From positions 62,001-126,000 of the forward strand of contig JALMLS010000052.1 in the NCBI GenBank assembly GCA_038496445.1: DNA of 64,000 nt. The letters are read 5' to 3'. The first letter of the stretch is position 1. Every line of letters starts with the position of its first letter. Under the pieces are notes generated by a model. That model worked only from the letters and a program-made list of their open reading frames with translations, searched no databases and was not told the origin of the DNA. The translations under genes and the position numbers were made by a program. Of the stretch, positions 1 to 10,779 are shown piece after piece. The DNA is from Trichosphaerium sp. ATCC 40318 (lineage: Eukaryota; Protista; Tubulinea).

Positions 1-1186
1 TACCTACGCTATTGGTTATATACTATAATGAGTTTTGAGCGGTTATAAGGCTCTGTGGTGTCGTAACGGGAAAATACGAGCAGTTTTATTTACAAACGTG
101 CGTACCAGTGTTGTAGCCAAAGATAATGCCCCCAAATATATTAATAAGCGCTAAAACGATGCTTGAAACCCTCCGTTCCCTAAACGCATTGTTTTGCCAA
201 AAGAAGACCTCAATAAATCAAAACGTACTCTTGCATTGTGGTAAAACAGCTTTGCTATCTGTAAGGGTTTTGAAATAAATAAAAATTGTATTTGTAGAAA
301 ACTTGCCGAATTTGAACTTTTCGAATGGCTAGGCTTGTATGAATTCGTTATAGATGAATTCATGTTTGTGCGGCTTCTTTATAGTACTAAAAAGAACCTG
401 TTGGTGTCAAAACAAAGAGTTTGTTTAGGCTTGCATTCAAAAAACAACATTACTCCCGAACTTTTAAGAAGCTCTCAATACATCACAAAGTGAGCTATTT
501 TGTATACTCACGATACACACTGAGTATTACGTCAAGGACTGATATCGTCAGACCTTGAGTTTGCACATAGGTCACAAAACACGTGAATTGTGAAAAACAA
601 TTTTTCAAAAAAATAGCTGTGAAAGTTGTATGTTCGTTTAGACAAATCAAGTTATCTTTATTCCAACATAAAAGCGCCAAAGCATTTAAAATCAAGCCAT
701 TTTAATGTCAAGACTCGAGACCAATATTGTGTTTGCTCAGGTTTTTCCATTTCTTTAGCTAATGAAATTCTTTTTGGTTGAAGATTCTTATGATAGCCGA
801 AAGGATTGAAATCAGAACTGTGGTGTCTCGTGACGGAAGGGTGGTGCAGGAAATGTGCCTTGCTACAATGAGTAGACTTGTGTAAGATGCTACAACTTCT
901 CTGTAAAACAGTCATCCAAACCTGTACAATCGAATGCAACTTAGTTGTATTATTTCACCTAAACTTGTCTTTATTAACAACGATACAAAACCATAGTTAG
1001 AAGTTTTTGATTGGAGTTGTTTTGTAAAAATTTAAGTATTCAAAGCTCGGCTTCTAATTGTCAGAACTCTTAAAAGACTGAAGTCATTCTAGCCATCACT
1101 GCAAAGCACGTTCTTGTTTCAGTTTCTGAACTTGCTCTGAGTTCTCTGAACCATAAACACAGACTGTGCATCACACCACATAAATA

Positions 1187-2156
1187 ATGTTGCTTTGGTT
1201 GCCAGTGGAATTGCAACACTCAATTTTCGAGCTTCATAAGGCTGTTTATGTGGTTTGGCCCGTTTTATGTAGAAAAGCGGCTCTAACCTCCCGATTCAAC
1301 GCAAACTTCGAAAAACACGGTAAATGGGTCCGTTGGGAGTCGGATACGATTCATTGCCTGCATACATCCTTTGAGAACGGATTAAAACATGGACAGTACA
1401 CGGAGTTTAGTTCTGATGGCATTGGTAGAGGTACGTACGTTAAAGACAAGAAGCACGGAAAATGTACTTGGAAGAACAAAGACGGTGTACTAATTGAAGA
1501 GGTACACTTAACCCAAGGCCAAGAACCCACCTGGGCTTTATCGTAATAATAGTTTTTGTAAACTGGTCCTTTCGTCAAAGTTACCTGTTTGCATTTGTTG
1601 GTAGTTCTCTTCTGTACTAATGCAAACGCTTTTGTAGGATGTCTTTAAAGAAGGGATTATTGATGGAGATTGTAAGGTTTGGCATGAAAATGGAGTTTTG
1701 AAGGAACATACACAGTATAAGGGTGGTTGTATGCATGGAAAAAGTAAAAGCTGGAATGAGGAAGGTATACTCACAAGTGAAGGAAACTATGTTAAAGGGC
1801 AACTCCATGGAATGCAGAGGTGTACTGTGTTCAGTGATATACATACAAGCCATTTCAATAAGGGTGTTAACGAAGGAGTGTACACAGTACATGATAGTAA
1901 AGGAACTATGACTAGTCAAATTTTGTACAAGAACAATTTACCTAGTGGTGTTTGGCGTAAATGGCATAGAAATGGACAACTTGCTTCTCAATGTACATTT
2001 GTTGATGGAAAAGAACAAGGTGTAACCCATCAATGGGATGATCAAGGTAATCTAGCACTTGAAGATCATTTTGTTGATGGAAAGAATTGCGGACAACACA
2101 CTGAGTATTATCTTGATGGAAGTATTAAAGAACAGTGGACTTGGCATGAGAATTAA
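1187..2156 (+). CDS. F-box-like N-terminus + MORN_2 (MORN variant) repeat protein, 277 aa, 2 exons (1187-1501, 1638-2156)
   Basis: GT..AG intron 1502-1637 joins ORF 1187 in frame with ORF 1698 (EE|DVFKEG). LLWLPVELQ is an F-box-like start; repeats follow GxxxxW(H/Y)xNGxLxxxxxYxxG. Confidence 0.8.
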
Positions 2157-2371
2157 AGCAAACACTAAGCAAAAAAACCCCTCATACAGGTTTTAACACA
2201 TAACCCGGAGGAAATAGATTAAATTTTTATGAAATTATGTTTAGGTATTAGTCCAAAGTAACACAAAAAAAAAAAAACTAAAGACGATGTCGAAATAACC
2301 TTTTATTCTAAGTTTTTTTTTTGAAATTTCTTCAACACAACATGAGTACACAATATTTGATTTTGTTTTCC

Positions 2372-5300
2372 TTATGCCTTAGGTGTCTCAATATCTACGC
2401 GTAGAGGAGCATTCCAATGCTTGGATTCTATAAGAGAAAATGTTAGAGAGCAACGAAAACAATTAACAAGAACGTTGAGTTTGTGGGGTTTTTTTTTATC
2501 AAAACGTTGCTTCGTACCATCAGTGTAATACAAGTATATCCTACTAGCAGGTCCTTCATAACTTCCAGGTATACGTGCAACAACATCCATATTGAAAGTA
2601 CGTTTACCACCTGGTCTCATAGCTCTAAGGTACAGTGCTACTTCACGTCCAAGTACTTCATAGAAATCGATTTTTCCGCTCTTAACAAGCTCAGCAAGCT
2701 GCTCATGACGTGGTTCTAAACCACCTGGTAGACCGATCTAAAGGTGAAATAAATAAGTACATTAAACGGTAGGGATACAGAAGGTAATGTAAACAGATTC
2801 TGAGTGATGTAAAGGAAACGTACAACAGCTATTGTCATCGGTTGTCCTTGTTCCTTATTCGTATTGATCATTTCTATTGCAATCTCACCACCTTCACCTT
2901 CTTCTATTGTGTTGGAGCTAAGCTTAGTAGATAGCTGAACTTCACAATCAGGATCATCATCAGGTACAAGCTAAAGGTCATAAGTACAAAAACAACAGCA
3001 CGGTAATAAAATTTTCAAGCGCAGAATTCTGTTAGGCTTTAGCGTACAGTGTTGTAAGCGACATTGCATGAGTATGGAACTGCGCCAACACCATCCATTT
3101 CAATTGAAATCTCATGATCTCCAGGTTGCGATAATTGTTCTGCTATGGAAGGCATAGCAAGCATACCATCCTTAACTTTCTTTGGATCAACGGATTTCTG
3201 TGACAGCAGTTAAAAAATGATGATGTCTTCAAAAAAACCCAAAAGATTCTTACGTTGTAGATGCTCTTTCCATCGACGACAACTGAAATAGTACCCTTCT
3301 TAGGTACACCCTTTGTAGCATCAAATGCTACAATTGCCTTTAAGGCGAGGATAGTCGATTGTGTGGAACCAAAGCGGCCGTTCTGTTAAAACAAAAGTCA
3401 GAGAATGATTTAAGGGAAACAAAGTTTCAACGTACAGTACACTTGCTTGTGATAAACTTCATGGCCCTGTCAGCGTTTGCAGCAAATTCAGGTCCACCTT
3501 GAACAAAGGCGTAGCAAGCTAAACTTGTTGCTTCAACAGATAGTGAGCATCCCCATCCCATAGTAATAGTTGTGAAACGAGAATCATGAAGTTTTGGATC
3601 CTTTCCTCCAAGAACACCACCGTTTTCGTCTTGAAGACTTTGAAGTTTTGTACACCACCCTTTGGCTTGATCTATCTCACCAACATTGAACAAAGAGCAA
3701 GCTAAAAGACTAGCAAAACATAAGTACGAAAAAAAGAAGAAAAGAACCAGCGTACCTAATGTAATATGAGTTATCCTCCTCTGCTACCTTGATCACGTGA
3801 TCAAACTCCTTTCTTAGAGCCTCATAACTTTCTCCAGAAGCGCTAAGAGCCCATACAATATAGATATTGGTAATAGACTCAGGAGCTTTTCCAAATTGAT
3901 CCAAAGCGCGACCGCCTCTTTGGAACTTTCCATTACCATCACGTCTAAAAAAAATATGTAAACAACTGTGCATTCCTCGCTTGTGAGTTTGATTTCGTAC
4001 CTAGACATTAACCATTTTCTGACACGTGGTATTAGAGCAGCTGACATACCGCCCCAAACCTTGGACATATCTGTAAATTGAAGCAACCCGTAGGAAGTCA
4101 AACTTTCCTAATTGAAGAAATAAGTAAACAGCAAATTATCATTGTAATAAGAAACTTACCGATGGTGGGTTAGAACCAAACCAATCGAAACCGCCCATTA
4201 CTTTACCATCTTTTTTACATTCATAGCCGACAAGACGCTTGTAACTTTTTTCAATCAAGTCTTTGCGTACAAGTCAGCGAAAGAAACAATGAGAAATAGA
4301 ATTTTACCTTTAGCTTTTTTAATAAGACTTGGACTGACGCCTGAGTGGGTCATGAAGTCTATAGTATGTAATCAGCACGATGCATTTTGTAGTTTAAAGC
4401 TATAGCGTACATTGTTGGGCCATAACCATTGGGTAGGAGGTTGAACTTGTTTGCTCTGTGAAGAACCAAAATTAGTTTTGAAAAAAACTAGTGGCTAATA
4501 GAAATGATGTAAAGCAGCGTACCAAAACAACCACTTGGCATTCTAACAAGTGCTTCCAATGCCTTTGTAAGGTTACTTGCTGGAGTAAAGTTGAAGTAAA
4601 TATTAGTTTCAACTGAACCGTCAATGACGCCGTCAGGTATAGAAACACTGAATGAAACTTTGTTTGCTTTCTTTGAAAGCATGCCAGAAGAAGAGAACAA
4701 GTAAGGGAATCCAGCAGGTAGAACAAGGGTTTCACGGGTTACAGTATCACTTAGATCACCAGCATCAGCTTTAAGTGTCAAGTTCAAGAGCTGAGTAGAG
4801 TTCTAACGAAGAAAAGTTAGTCGCAGTCCATCAGACTAAAATCACGTGTAGTTTTTTGTACTACATACCAAGACTTTCACTTCCGCGTTTGTTCTAGTAC
4901 GTGTTCCCTTTGGTACGCGTATAGGTTTGTTGATAGCAACAAGTTTGTCTCTTGCTGATTTTTTACCACTCTTTGACTCCTTCTTAGTTCCAGAGAACTT
5001 TAAGGCACTCTTTGTCTCTTTGTTTCGTTTATAAGAGAGTTGCACGCTCATATCTTTATCAGTAGCATTAACAAGAGAACAAGGGATGATGATTTTATCT
5101 CCAGTTGAAACCTAAAGAAAGTTATAAGACGTTTATTACGTAAAAAATAACAGCAAAAAGAACTCAAAGCACTCAAATTAAGTACCTCAACAGGTAGTTT
5201 GTACTCCATATAGAATGGGTTCTTGCTTGTAACAACCTTGCTCGTAGCACCGATCATGCTTCCACTAAACCCTTCAACGTGTACCTGCGGTTAAGTAAGA

Positions 5301-8300
5301 AATAAGAATAGAGCGTGATTAAAAAATAAACAAATGTTGAACTATAAGAAAGCGTGCCTTGAAAGAGGTGATAGAGTCATTCAAATCAAAAGAGATATCA
5401 CTTCCACCAGCTTGAGAAGATGCGGTTTCAGTACTCAAACGCGTTTGAGAATCACAAAGAGCAACACATGGATATACTCCATCTAAAACAATGCACAAGT
5501 TAGCACCAGGTAAACAACCCCTTTTGGAAACACGTATACTTACTTTTAGCTGTGTTAAGGTTTGAGTATGCAACACCCAAGTCAGTATCATTCTTCTTGA
5601 ACGCGATAGTACCCTATTATATTTTAGTTATGACTAGCTAAGCGAGGCTTAAGACTAACCTCGTTAACATCAATAATCACAGTAATAACGTCACCATCTC
5701 CAAATCCCTGCTTGCTCCATTGGCTATCTGCAGATCCGTTGGAGTATTTGTACCTGTAACATTGTTAGCACGTGAAACTATAAATGTATTTATAGTTTTA
5801 TTTACCCTTGAGAACTTCCATAGTACGACCAACCAAGAGGCTTGCCAGTTTGACCAGGATAGCGGTTGAGATATGCTGGAGAGTCTAAAACTTCTCCAGA
5901 AATAGCTCCAACGAAAATAGAGTGTGATGCCGATGCTGCCTTGTTAACTGTTAAAGTAAACTCTAATCGACCTTGGACAGGGTTTTTAGATATAAGAGTT
6001 CCCCATCCAGAAGAGTTATAGAAGAAGGTGTCCTAAGTAAAGAGATTAGAGACGAAACTGTTTTCTTTTCTAAGAAAAAGCACAAAAAACTCAAAAGATA
6101 GTACTTACATTATCAACTTTCCACTTGGAGCATCGTTCAAAATCCCATTCAACAGTTTGTGAACTTGGACCACCAACTTCTTTACAAGCATTCCAATACA
6201 ATGTTTCAGTAAAATCCTTTCTTTCACCTGCTTTCCAATCAGCTCTCCTCTTGTGTGCGTAAACGCGGACCACACGCTCTAGGGAGGGTGCATGTAAGCT
6301 TTAATTGCATTGGAGGACATGACTTACTTGCTACAGCAGCCTGTGGAACTGGGCTTGCTACTATCTGAGGCGCTCTCCTTTTCCTGGCCATTTTCTTCTT
6401 GCCTTTTTTCATAATTTTCCTTGCTTTAGGTGCCTTGTCTCGCATTTTCATTGGTGGCGCAGCAGCTCTTTGTGGCATCGCTTGTGCTTTTGCTGCCTGG
6501 GCAGGTTTAAAAAGTACAGGAGCAGCTTGTGCCATTGGAGCAGGAGCAGCTGGAGGTGGAGGAGGACCGCGAGCCATTGGAGGCGCACGAGGGCCACGAG
6601 CCATTGGAGGTGGAGGAGGACCACCAGCGCCTGGTCGTGGAGGAGCACCACCCATTGGAGGTGGAGGAGGACCGCGAGCCATTGGTTTTCCTCTGAACTG
6701 CATGCCGCCACGACCGCGACCACCGCGACCACCGCCGAAACCACCAGGTGCTGGTGGTGGTGGAGGGGTGTTTATTATAGGTTTAGGTGTTGGTGTGCCC
6801 TTGTGGATACCCAAAAGCCTCTCAGCAGCTTCATCAGAAGAAGCACGTGGCATGGTTTTACCATCTTCTTCTTTTGTATTTGTAATAAATTGTGCAGGAT
6901 CAACAAAAGCAAATCTACGCCAACCCTAACACGTGGTTAGCGTTTTGGTGTTTATATTTGCCTAAAGCATTTATAACATACTTGAGTACCAAGAAGTAAG
7001 TCTAATGCAATATTAGACTTTGGATGTTCTTTGTCAAGGTAAACATGAGCCTAACAAATACTGTAAGACACAAAGGGTTTCTTCTTTTATAGTTGAAGAC
7101 ATACGTCTTCTAAGTGATCAACATCATCTTCTAGAAATACTTGAGCTGGGAGTCTTGGTACTTGTTTACGAGTTTGCACCATTTCAAGTACCTAAACAGA
7201 AGAGAAATGTAAATAAAAATAAAGTAAAGTTAAGAGCTAATCGCAAAAAAAACTAAAACTTACAGCATCATCAGTTACACAAACACCAACTGTACTTTCA
7301 ACTGGTTCTCCATTCTCATCAAATGTATCAATGTTAAGTCCAATTTTATCACCAGGTGCATATGTCTCTCTGTTAGTACTGACGACAATCTTCATCTCCT
7401 TTCCAGGACGCCTTAAGTATAATCAGTTGCAAGTCACAAGCAAAGGTAGGTTAGAGTTTTTCCAATTTACAAAAAACGCTAGGTTACCTAAACACTAATC
7501 TTTCGGCTTTTGGAAGTCCAGTACTATCGAATACAGTAACACGTAATACACCATCAGCAATACCAGAAGAAGGAAGGGTCATTTCTACATCCACAACGTC
7601 ATTATCGTTTCTAAGTTAAAATTAGTAAACACGTCAAAAAAGTACAACAATTACTTGATTTCAACATCTAATATAGTCACTTCTGCATCACGTTTGTAAC
7701 ATCCAACTCTATAGTAACCGGCCTGAGTAGCTCCTAGGCGGAAGCCTAGAGGTTCACCAGCAACGTATACTTCTTTATGTGCAATAAGGCTTACACCACT
7801 AGCTTTAACCTCTGGGAGAGGGTTCTGCACCTTGATTCCTGATGGATCAAGTATACGGAGTGTGTAAGATTTGCCCACTTGTGGTGTAAATGATCCACGA
7901 CCTTTAACAAAGTCACCAATGTACAACAAAGACGAGAATTTGAGAAAGGCACTGATTTTTTATCAAAAATAGGTTTATACCTCTGCCTTCGTGCATGGTT
8001 TGCAAGAATCCTGCAGGAACGTCGTTTTCATCAACAATTTGACCTGACAAGTCAGCTGGATCTCCTGTTGGTGTGAAAGCTAGGACATAGATAAGCCAGA
8101 TATACTCACTTAGATCTTTTTTTGCATCTTTTCTTACCTTCTAAGTAAACTCTAGCTGGGAGACCAGCTACCAAATCTCCACCTTCTGGATAGAATTTCA
8201 TATCGATGTTTTGTAATCTAAAGAGTGCGAGGTAAGATACGAAATAGTCTCACAAAGGTTCTTGACAAATCAAATTTGTAAGCAAGTTTTTTTGTTGACC

Positions 8301-10236
8301 ATTTCTGTGTGTACGTACAAGATAGGGATAGTTTGTCCAGTAGATTCAATGGTACCATTATCGTTTACAGTACATGTGAGTGTGCCTTCTCCCATTTTTA
8401 TGGATGTTGGGAGTGTAAACCTACAATGAAAATCAACTAACTGGCTAGGTTCAAAAATAAAATAACTTACTTGACAACAAGTTTACCATCTACCAACTTT
8501 TCTTCTTTACGGAAGGTTTCATCACCGTCTATACGTGCAACACATGTAACAGTAGCTTTATCAGGAACTCCTCCTTCTGAGCGCTCAACTGAAAGGTTTG
8601 CAGTGACCTTATCACCTGGGCCGTAGCCTTTTTTTGGAAATTCCAATTGGAGCTTCATGCGTGCTAAATCAACCGAGTTAGACAATTACATCTTTCAATT
8701 TGTGTCTGTTTGTACGTACGTGTACTGAAACTTCTCACGTTGAAAGATCTTTCAGCTGGTGGACAACTAAAATTTTTTGCGAGTGTTACAGGTCAAATCA
8801 AAAATAAAGCAGTTTTTAGATTACCCTTCATTCCAGAATTTGAGGTTGAGAACGTAGTCACCGCCTTCTTGATCTGCAGGAATATCCCAAGAGCCAGATA
8901 CAGTAGAAGATTTTGGTGGTCCTATAATACGTGTTACAAGCAGTGCAAGTAAAACTGAAAAAAATACGAACCCAAGTCTGAATTTAATGATTCGCTTCCA
9001 CTAGGCGCTTTGATGACGAGCTTTGCTCCCCATAGCGGGAAAAGTTGTTTTAAGATATGTTCAGGTACTGGTTCTTGTGTATGAACATGCAATAAAACGG
9101 CTCTAAAGTAAAGGGTATCCCCAGGTCGATAGATTGGCTGAAAAAATGTTAACAGACAGCGAAGGCGAAGTGGATTTTTGATCCGAAAAACAAAAACACG
9201 TGTTTACCTTATCTGTTGTGATACGTGCAATATAACGCTCGCGCCATTCGAACCTCTTCTTCAACGTCTTGCTCACGTTGTATTTATTCCATAAGTCCTC
9301 AACATTGTACATAAAAGGACGACCACCAAAGTTTGATACAATCTCAGCAGTGTTGTCCATTCCAATAAGTGGGTAGTATTCACCTAAACAATCACAAAGT
9401 TAGCGTTTAGTGTTTTTTTTTGGTAATACGATAGTACTTCGATGTCGTGCAATCAGTTAAACACATACCTTTTAGACTCTTTGGTAGTTTAATGGTTCCG
9501 TCCTTCAAGACTACTTCGCCATTTTTTGTAAAGTATAGACCATCTTTATCGTATCCACATCCAATGGTATCGCCTTGTTCGAATGTAGCTGCTTTGGCAA
9601 CTGCCTTACTGCCAGATTCGGCAAACAAACTTCCATCATCAGAATGATACCCGTAAGATCTAAATCGTATGAGGCAATGATTCAAACGTTTTGAAGCATT
9701 TCGTACCCTTTAATCCAACCAGGAAGTTGCTGTGTCCTGGGAAAATCTTTCCGTCCGAGCCCAACAGCCAAGCAAGTCTTTTTATCAAGCTATAGAGAGT
9801 TGGTGGTTTTCGGGGATGTGTTGTACGTACAGCGATGATGGTTACTTCAAAGTAGTATGAATCGTGAGTTTCAACGTTTACAGGTGTATTTGCCAGCGTG
9901 GCGTAAAGTAGTTAAGAACAAATGGTTCAACGCCAAAAAAAAGCGAAAATGCGAGTAAAAATGAACTAGTATGCTACCAGTTCGTAGTTTAAGGATATAA
10001 ATTCAGTTTCGGTAACGCATTCGTTTAGAATACGTTTGCCAGAAAACACCTTAAGTTGGCTAGGTGCGTTGGGTTGTACCCATTTAGAAGGGTATCTCAA
10101 CGATTTACCTTTATTTGCCCAACTGAAAATAGAGAAAGGCTCTGTCTATTCCTGAGTGAGCGTACAAAACGAAGAGAGCGTAAAGAAGTGAAAAGGCTAT
10201 GAAGACCAATTTAATATTAGTTTATTGACATACCAT
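2372..10236 (-). CDS. Alpha-2-macroglobulin/thioester-containing protein (bacterial-type A2M) with an N-terminal SPRY, an inserted second SPRY and a Pro/Arg/Gly-rich bait; about 30 introns
   Basis: Spliced motifs ITTDK|PIYRPGD, RKDFTETLYWNA, FDLNDSITSF, RMPSGCF|EQTSSTSYP (thioester CxEQ), GGFDWFG, LTSYGLLQFTDM, G(R)FGSTQSTILALKA, PASRIYLYY. SPRY motifs YYFEV..LPGW..SYGYHSDDG..GDTIGCG..FTKNG and GWSYYG..GDVITV..YPCVAL. The ATG at 10236 is directly followed by a GTATGT donor; the start is tentative. Confidence 0.88.
9903..9998 (-). other. U12-type (minor spliceosome) AT-AC intron in the A2M gene
   Basis: 5' ATATCCTTAAAC, branch site TTCTTAAC ending 8 nt before the intron end, 3' TTTAC. Removal gives in-frame ETEF|ATLANTPV..YYFEV. 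Confidence 0.88.
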
Positions 10237-10779
10237 AGTGTTCGTTAGTTTGGTAACTTGTTGTTATGTAGACAACCGAAAACCAAATACGGACCTTGAC
10301 TTAACATGCACCAAACAAAAACAACTCCTACTCGTGCTGCTGCCTGAGAAAGCGAAACCGTGTTCTAACCTGTGAGCTTTTTGTTTTGAGAAAACCGAGG
10401 CAAAACCAGAAACCAAAGTTCGCTTCCTACGCGTCAGCATTCGCGTAGGTATGGGGGAAACATACGCGAGGTTCAAGAGTGGTTATTAGGTGAAGCTAGT
10501 ATATTCATGCGTGTTTACGGTAAAACAACAAAAAATAAGCGCATCAATTTTGGAAAACTACATGGTTGTCGCAACCTCACAACGTAACCTAAAAAATCGG
10601 GTATTGATTAAGTATTGACCCAATGACAAATTTTCTGTGAAGTAGAATTCGAGCCGCAGGCATCAATTCGACGTTAAAACAATAGTCATTTCAAAACTGT
10701 GCTGCATCAATCATTTAAAATAACATACAGTCAGGTATGAAAGGCTCCGAATATAGTTAATACACTTTTACTTTTCTCA

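Follow-up and report, generated by a model that had tools for sequence, protein, structure and literature searches.

A signal-less thioester macroglobulin of bacterial descent with two SPRY domains in the amoeba Trichosphaerium: a candidate cytosolic trap

Proteins of the alpha-2-macroglobulin (A2M)/complement superfamily combine a ring of macroglobulin (MG) domains, MG1-MG6, with a thioester domain (TED) carrying a CxEQ motif, and a bait or activation segment precedes a strand of the type ...F.E(T/S)W.W. This layout is common to the animal proteins A2M, A2ML1, and CD109, insect TEP1, and complement C3/C4/C5. To our knowledge, every thioester protein that has been studied, including complement C3/C4, A2M, insect thioester proteins (TEPs), CD109, and bacterial ECAM, works outside the cytoplasm. 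Here, we describe a gene of the marine amoeba Trichosphaerium sp. ATCC 40318 that lies at 10236-2372 on the minus strand of a 64,000-nucleotide window (contig JALMLS010000052.1, positions 62,001 to 126,000; all coordinates below refer to this window, and all features of the gene are on its minus strand). The product is an expressed member of the A2M/complement thioester superfamily. It differs from the animal proteins, which are secreted or GPI-anchored, have signal peptides, and lack SPRY domains, and it resembles them far less than it resembles a bacterial subfamily. On balance, and with modest confidence, we favour the reading that it is a SPRY-bearing thioester macroglobulin of bacterial descent, probably cytosolic or nucleocytoplasmic, that would act as a cleavage-triggered trap.

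Bacterial thioester proteins are represented in the literature by ECAM (YfhM) of E. coli and the A2M of Salmonella. Both are periplasmic lipoproteins. They belong to the A2M family and are structurally studied snap-trap inhibitors, thought to trap proteases (PMC4498604). In Amoebozoa, the nearest precedent that we found appears to be DdiCPRas2 of Dictyostelium, a COG2373/A2M-like protein with a cpRAS GTPase inserted between macroglobulin repeats, for which the authors proposed gene transfer from bacteria (PMC2430557). Both this protein and the one described here are amoebozoan and have a bacterial-type macroglobulin scaffold with an inserted domain of intracellular type. They differ in that DdiCPRas2 carries a GTPase instead of SPRY and that no thioester was reported for it (PMC2430557). 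The CAGE complex, which occurs in signal-bearing bacteria and in signal-less microbial eukaryotes and is described with 15 domains, an alpha-helical domain, and two MG-like domains, was considered as a relative and set apart by its description, which gives a different fold and architecture and mentions no thioester (bioRxiv 10.1101/2025.09.22.677704). Our literature search found no description of a SPRY-thioester fusion or of a cytosolic thioester protein in protists, and the Trichosphaerium genome paper makes no mention of macroglobulins or SPRY (PMC10521059).

The gene consists of 38 exons and 37 introns of 41-101 nt, with 5505 coding bases that encode 1834 amino acids without internal stops; the coding region (2372..10236) opens with the ATG at 10236-10234 and ends with the stop codon at 2374-2372. 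Publicly available contigs from four runs, which belong to three studies, were aligned over 4400-10399 and could be recognised as cDNA because they are spliced (CT..AC on the plus strand). They back 18 of the 37 introns, and the other introns were set by homologue-guided reading frames. The supported introns are 9998-9903, 9830-9790, 9706-9660, 9468-9384, 9207-9138, 8824-8767, 8719-8664, 8137-8080, 7980-7902, 7654-7611, 7487-7412, 7263-7192, 7104-7051, 6981-6926, 6327-6279, 6107-6032, and 5543-5483; intron 10233-10146 is backed by the loose end of a contig. Taken together, the spliced contigs span 4600-10284 in three studies and join the SPRY, MG, and linker exons. The 3' third of the model was set by environmental homologues found with the TED exon, and the last intron (2517-2428) was placed by homology to one of these relatives, P0009. 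Moreover, the N-terminal 750 residues are colinear with a single uninterrupted open reading frame (ORF) of the relative L085, an intronless 2996-nt metagenome/metatranscriptome contig with 38% GC, and the N-terminal half of the gene model is therefore validated. No second copy of the gene was found in the 64-kb window.

A trivial explanation of such an unusual domain combination would be that neighbouring SPRY and A2M genes had been wrongly merged, or that bacterial contamination was involved. The first automatic gene model did contain errors, and single exons of the second SPRY domain (SPRY2) have no Pfam match. Nevertheless, this explanation is very improbable. The cDNA contigs bridge the first SPRY domain (SPRY1) to MG1 (joints 9381|9467 and 9137|9208), they bridge the linker to the conserved strand RKDFTETLYWNA and to SPRY2 (joints 6328|6278 and 6108|6031), and they bridge SPRY2 to its last exon (5544|5482). 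In L085, SPRY and MG domains share one ORF, and 37 spliceosomal introns, one of them of the U12 type, rule out bacterial DNA. An earlier reading of the window, made from sequence only, had named SPRY exons belonging to another gene as the result that would overturn it; the contigs instead connect these exons to the macroglobulin exons. Its description of a thioester A2M protein with two SPRY domains is thus sustained, with all of these parts in one expressed mRNA.

The body of the protein is close to bacterial sequences. It is 40-42% identical to bacterial A2M-family proteins over approximately 1345 residues and reaches 1425 bits with a profile built from 30 bacterial homologues. At least 577 loci of this A2M subfamily were found when one genome per prokaryotic species was considered, and Planctomycetota were dominant among them. 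The full-length bacterial ORFs that were extracted have a median length of 1390 aa, and the GCFEQ motif is nearly invariant in the homologues. Pfam domains on two bacterial members are MG2, A2M_BRD (weak), A2M, TED_complement, and bMG10/A2M_recep. These uncharacterised A2M-family ("YfaS") proteins of Planctomycetota, Myxococcota, Lentisphaerota, Gammaproteobacteria, and others have in common with the amoeba protein a core order of MG2, A2M_BRD, disordered linker, A2M, TED_complement with GCFEQ, and bMG10/A2M_recep. They differ in their length of approximately 1350-1400 aa, a hydrophobic N-terminal signal, the absence of SPRY domains and introns, and a shorter linker with a neutral median charge.

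Relatives of the gene allow the branch to be specified. The homologue P0008 carries Pfam TED_complement, and the solved structures nearest to it are those of CD109, A2ML1, and A2M (phmmer, E approximately 6e-14). It is 30-36% identical to A2M-family proteins of Planctomycetota, Myxococcota, and Bacteroidota, with up to 243 bits, and scores about 240 bits against the bacterial subfamily as compared with 55 bits against animal proteins. ECAM and Salmonella A2M are not among its Protein Data Bank (PDB) matches at E values up to 1 and therefore represent a different bacterial branch. By these comparisons, the amoeba protein belongs to the complement-like bacterial A2M branch and not to the ECAM branch. 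An unrooted maximum-likelihood tree of the C-terminal half splits the amoeba protein together with six environmental fragments from 56 bacterial rows (SH-aLRT 99), and the next two nested sets in the same unrooted tree add rows of Planctomycetota and Sumerlaeota. The bacterial-type A2M base that had been proposed from the letters of the window agrees with the identity values, the profile score, and this phylogeny. A search of a representative protein library with the TED exon returned 9 matches only; the top match, P0001, was a spurious repeat match and was discarded.

The individual core domains can be followed along the gene. The bacterial profile gives MG1-MG6 (residues ~203-739; 6839..9273) a score of 624 bits. 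For Pfam MG2, the score is no more than 19.2 bits on the amoeba's own MG exon and 54.8 bits in L085. In an AlphaFold model of L085, the MG ring has pLDDT values above 90 and the SPRY part values of approximately 30 (shallow alignment), and Foldseek matches the modelled ring to the beta chains of C3, C5, and C4 (E 1e-22), TEP1, and CD109. The MG ring typical of the superfamily is thus recognised by the bacterial profile, by MG2 of L085, and by the comparison of the L085 model with C3/C5. The C-terminal half of the protein scores 750 bits against the bacterial profile. It contains the TED (residues ~1320-1640; 3266..4601), and homologues found with the TED exon are TED_complement proteins that carry PF07678. 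A C-terminal MG8/receptor-binding-like domain (2375..2970) completes the superfamily set; on exon 2519-2737, Pfam bMG10 scores 23.6 bits and A2M_recep 21.7 bits, the latter equal to the cut-off.

The thioester motif G-C-F-E-Q (Cys1344; 4451..4532) gives the TED its CxEQ signature and is split by intron 4456-4522, the junction reading ATG CCA AGT GGT TGT TTT G|gtacgc...cacag|AG CAA ACA. cDNA depth is 0 at 4400-4599, and the intron is supported by the reading frame, its GT..AG ends, and homologues with an unbroken GCFEQ. On these grounds the earlier description of a GCFEQ assembled across this intron holds. A loose alignment to A2M suggests an Asp in ...RALDQFG... as a possible equivalent of C3 His1104, but we make no claim on it. 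Conservation of the core extends beyond the motif: of the 340 columns in which bacterial identity reaches 90% or more, the amoeba protein retains 289 (85%), GCFEQ included. With this proportion of near-invariant sites, and with the thioester motif in all eukaryotic relatives seen, the core is too conserved to be a decaying relic.

This conservation bears on a second interpretation, namely that the A2M body now serves as a large scaffold or cage in which the thioester has little or no role. The SPRY domains and the linker would then bind profilin, SH3/WW/GYF proteins, RNA, or a CTLH-like ligase, and the protein would serve the cytoskeleton, trafficking, or protein homeostasis and not defence. 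Dictyostelium offers an example of intracellular reuse in Amoebozoa in its A2M-like protein with an inserted GTPase (PMC2430557). Against a mere scaffold, GCFEQ and the 85% of near-invariant bacterial residues have been kept, the TED included, and GCFEQ is also retained in the eukaryotic relatives P0008 and L083. Such conservation therefore argues for selection on trap chemistry.

The disordered bait-position region (residues 718-912; 6329..6904), across which the cDNA contigs X1 and X4 are colinear with the genome, contains 23% Pro, 17% Ala, and 12% Gly and has a net charge of +28. Its motifs include poly-Pro, RGG (GGRGGRGRGG), a repeated MARGPPPPP, and a KKGKKKMARKRR cluster. Measured from GWRRF to RKDF, the span has 213 aa, of which 21% are Pro, and its net charge is +31, as compared with a bacterial median of 154 aa and a net charge of 0. 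It sits between the Pfam positions of A2M_BRD and A2M in bacterial homologues, and by this position it is a predicted exposed bait or activation segment. In orthologues, its composition changes from Pro/Arg/Gly-rich and basic in the amoeba to Lys/Ala/Met-rich and basic in L085 and acidic and Ser-rich in the relative L100, and the flanking strands are nearly identical (L085:2160-2720; L100:700-1180; window 6329-6904). A scaffold would fit the resemblance of the linker to proline-rich and RGG interaction motifs, as we read it, and such great variation from basic to acidic. Hypervariable linkers are, however, typical of bait regions. We consider the scaffold interpretation unlikely, at roughly one chance in five, and retain the trap as the favoured reading.

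The SPRY domain is a protein-recognition fold. SPRY1 (residues ~40-193; 9301..10031) is encoded by five exons and stands at the place of the bacterial signal peptide. Its central exon scores 27.0 bits against Pfam SPRY (PF00622), for which the cut-off is 26.3 bits. The domain matches solved RanBP9/RanBP10 SPRY domains in the PDB with an E value of 1.4e-5, and it scores 87.3 bits against a custom profile built from six unrelated fungal (Glomeromycota) proteins annotated with PF00622. Residues 1 to ~200 are without bacterial counterpart, and the alignment to bacteria restarts at RYIARITTDKPIYRPGD. By these matches, SPRY1 is nearest to the RanBP9/10 type. The amoeba protein nevertheless differs from these proteins of the CTLH complex, since it is without LisH, CTLH, and CRA domains and its SPRY is fused to a predicted thioester machine. 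The sequence-only reading had likened the domains to those of cytosolic proteins of the TRIM/pyrin type. SPRY domains are indeed present, but the likeness to TRIM/pyrin B30.2 receptors is a looser one: Pfam scans of the exons and of the L085 orthologue gave no RING, B-box, PRY, coiled-coil, or pyrin domain, and SPRY1 is nearest to RanBP9/10.

The second SPRY domain is inserted in the macroglobulin part. The strand RKDFTETLYWNA (6187..6222), which corresponds to the bacterial consensus RxDFxETxYW after the bait region, is covered by cDNA and is followed by an insert of ~176 aa (residues 941-1116; 5424..6186) in five exons, which ends before ISFDLNDSITSFK. Bacterial homologues have approximately 15 residues at this site, and the insert is absent from all 30 of 30. 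Across the 1834 residues, the custom SPRY profile detects two domains and no more, namely SPRY1 and SPRY2, the latter at 22.1 bits (E 5e-9). Among the controls, none of 500 shuffles exceeded 4.4 bits, and no bacterial homologue exceeded 2.5 bits. The earlier claim of a second SPRY inside the macroglobulin part is upheld by this difference. The largest SPRY2 exon retrieved nothing but noise when searched against PDB sequences, and comparison of SPRY1 with SPRY2 by BLASTP and hhalign was not significant (E 0.59), though the alignment register was sensible. The first SPRY2 exon has ESM neighbours in the Neuralized and SPRY families, but this is no more than a lead.

The N-terminus of the protein could be mapped on transcripts. 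In the cDNA contig X1, which reads ...AACACTATG|ACAGAGCC, the ATG exon is spliced to 10145, so that the N-terminus M|TEPFSIF... predicted in the sequence-only reading is a real junction. The contig X4 is colinear with the genome up to 10284, which gives a 5' untranslated region of 10237..10284. Beyond 10284, X4 has 8 extra letters with the reverse complement GTACGGGG. They resemble the end of a template-switch oligo, and the 5' end of the mRNA (cap site) is thus probably near 10284. The interval 10284-10237 contains no ATG, and an in-frame TAA lies 9 codons 5' of the start ATG.

No signal peptide, signal anchor, or transmembrane segment was found by Kyte-Doolittle hydropathy in the whole protein, in which the highest 19-residue mean is 1.09. 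In 53 of 60 bacterial homologues, a hydrophobic N-terminal stretch is followed by ...RYLTHLSTDKPIYRPGE (the TDKPIYRPG region). The position of this signal is occupied by SPRY1 in the amoeba protein, and the maximum hydropathy there is 1.24. The secretion signal that characterises secreted, periplasmic, or GPI-anchored members of the superfamily is therefore missing, and L085 is likewise signal-less. The lack of a signal peptide noted earlier stands on the mapped transcript, given its hydropathy, the in-frame TAA, and the absence of an upstream ATG; an upstream exon supplying a signal peptide, which would have overturned that claim, is not present up to the mapped 5' end at 10284. A cytosolic or nucleocytoplasmic location is accordingly what the sequence most likely points to, and we hold this with fair confidence because the signal has been replaced by an intracellular-type SPRY and because the linker has gained RGG, poly-Pro, and basic motifs.

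A third interpretation keeps the same protein and places its activity outside the cytosol. It would leave the cell by unconventional export or be delivered to the phagosome or lysosome, where it would guard against proteases of ingested bacteria, a role also ascribed to the periplasmic bacterial relatives, with its SPRY domains serving as lectin-like or adhesive modules. All characterised A2M/TEP proteins act in the extracellular or periplasmic space, the bacterial homologues bear signal peptides, and the A2M core is strongly conserved. In addition, the amoeba eats bacteria (PMC10521059). However, a signal peptide, anchor, or transmembrane segment is lacking here and in the orthologue L085, and the RanBP9/10-type SPRY at the signal position and the RGG/poly-Pro/basic linker are features of intracellular proteins. 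We therefore give this interpretation a low probability, similar to that of the scaffold, and continue to prefer a trap within the cell.

Related genes were found in other eukaryotes. The L085 ORF begins after an in-frame stop with MEDFNKFNVY... and continues through SPRY (Pfam 65.2 bits), the MG2 domain, other MG domains, and a basic linker. It aligns with model residues 5-751 in a single alignment with 49% identity; past a frame shift in a low-complexity region, it continues with ...SDFTETLYWNTS and the beginning of an insert. The signal-less SPRY-MG fusion is, by this comparison, conserved. L100 is 53% identical and has a SPRY insert after ...RQDFTETLYWNA, the same site as that of SPRY2; the halves of the insert match Pfam SPRY at positions 3-66 with 17.8 bits and at positions 68-104 with 23.1 bits. 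In the P0004 contig (GCA_020064125.1), a 337-aa SPRY ORF lies ~700 nt upstream of an A2M-domain ORF on the same strand. L083 (from an environmental eukaryote; 58% GC, with introns, 44-4663) is 58-73% identical to the amoeba gene in the best-conserved blocks. Intron read-through in the environmental fragments P0005-P0007 points to an origin in eukaryotic genomes. A metagenome scan with the SPRY1/MG1 junction exon gave no match, and the ESM Atlas gave weak leads or nothing. The superfamily is a known one, but the domain architecture is new, and several uncultured eukaryotes share it.

From these comparisons we infer a cytosolic location, formation of the thioester, cleavage-triggered trapping, and the nature of the targets, and a history and a mechanism can be proposed. 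In an amoebozoan lineage, a gene of bacterial descent gained 37 introns, and its signal peptide was swapped for a RanBP9/10-type SPRY. A second SPRY was set into the MG6 hairpin directly behind the bait-position linker, and the linker turned into a long, strongly basic, Pro/Gly/Arg-rich disordered stretch. The subfamily to which the protein belongs is arranged as MG ring, bait-position linker, A2M domain, CUB, TED with GCFEQ, and MG8. As in other A2M/TEP proteins, a protease that cuts the exposed linker would cause a conformational change, which would expose the Cys1344-Gln1347 thioester and let it bond covalently to the attacker or to a surface close by. Either the delivery of targets to the bait or the attraction of downstream partners would fall to the SPRY domains. 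SPRY2 lies right after the post-bait strand, a plausible spot from which to hold a target at the bait or to report its cleavage. The functional part of the sequence-only reading, an intracellular trap directed at proteases of endosymbionts or viruses, is plausible as a conjecture.

Several points weigh against this proposal. First, in the runs that were used, no cDNA covers intron 4522-4456 in the thioester motif or any of the 3' third of the gene (<4600). Second, hydropathy and the mapped transcript are the sole basis for calling the signal absent, and unconventional secretion does occur in amoebae. Third, the identification of SPRY2 relies on a home-made profile and one orthologue. L083 has no SPRY2, with 80 nt only between ...TLYW and ...FELNDSIT; SPRY2 is therefore not essential to the family and was gained or lost within the eukaryotic clade. 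Poly-Pro, RGG, and basic clusters are, moreover, typical of interaction or nuclear-import motifs and do not specifically suggest a protease bait. Finally, no characterised member of the complement-like, GCFEQ-bearing bacterial subfamily was found in the literature.

The introns of the gene have some further features. An AT-AC (U12-type) intron lies inside SPRY1 (9903..9998), with the donor ATATCCTT, the branch site TTCTTAAC, and the end AC; it is removed in three runs, with the joint 9902|9999 (GT..AT on the plus strand). A probable GC-AG intron (GCACGC...CAG; 5285..5357) is deduced from the reading frame and from a contig break-off. Its removal yields ...SFK|VHVEG..., which fits the family pattern, and the contig X3 diverges from the genome exactly at 5357, the spliced letters themselves being unseen. 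Two introns backed by cDNA are very short, with 41 nt (9790-9830) and 44 nt (7611-7654); the mean intron length in the Trichosphaerium genome is 75 bp (PMC10521059). The donors of this gene are mostly GTA(A/C/T)G(T/C), frequently GTACGC or GTACGT. Single-base differences between cDNA runs were seen at 9242-9560 and 4941-7804, for instance six in X4 within 9242-9560, which suggests alleles, strains, or close paralogues.

Two further loci of the window were noted. A gene at 1187-2156 on the plus strand encodes MORN_2 repeats (Pfam 57 bits, 1698-2153); MORN and F-box are common virus-derived domains in the Trichosphaerium genome (PMC10521059). On the minus strand, the product of a 247-aa ORF at 11359-12102 matches no Pfam family. 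It combines an extended mucin-like stretch rich in Thr and Pro with a hydrophobic C-terminus and could be a surface protein held by a GPI anchor or in the membrane.

The gene is a clean example of the domestication of a gene of bacterial descent, with introns gained, a signal peptide lost, and host domains inserted. If the protein is cytosolic and reactive, the chemistry of covalent snap-traps and opsonins would extend inside the eukaryotic cell and add a branch to the cell-autonomous immunity of protists living alongside bacteria and giant viruses. More tentatively, and as a possibility that we rate below even, amoebae and several uncultured protists may have an intracellular complement-like effector of bacterial origin that is aimed by SPRY domains and that covalently traps or tags the proteases or the surfaces of giant viruses or of bacteria within the cell. 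If true, this would be the first dedicated cytosolic thioester-based defence. Intracellular thioester-based trapping is a directly testable hypothesis.

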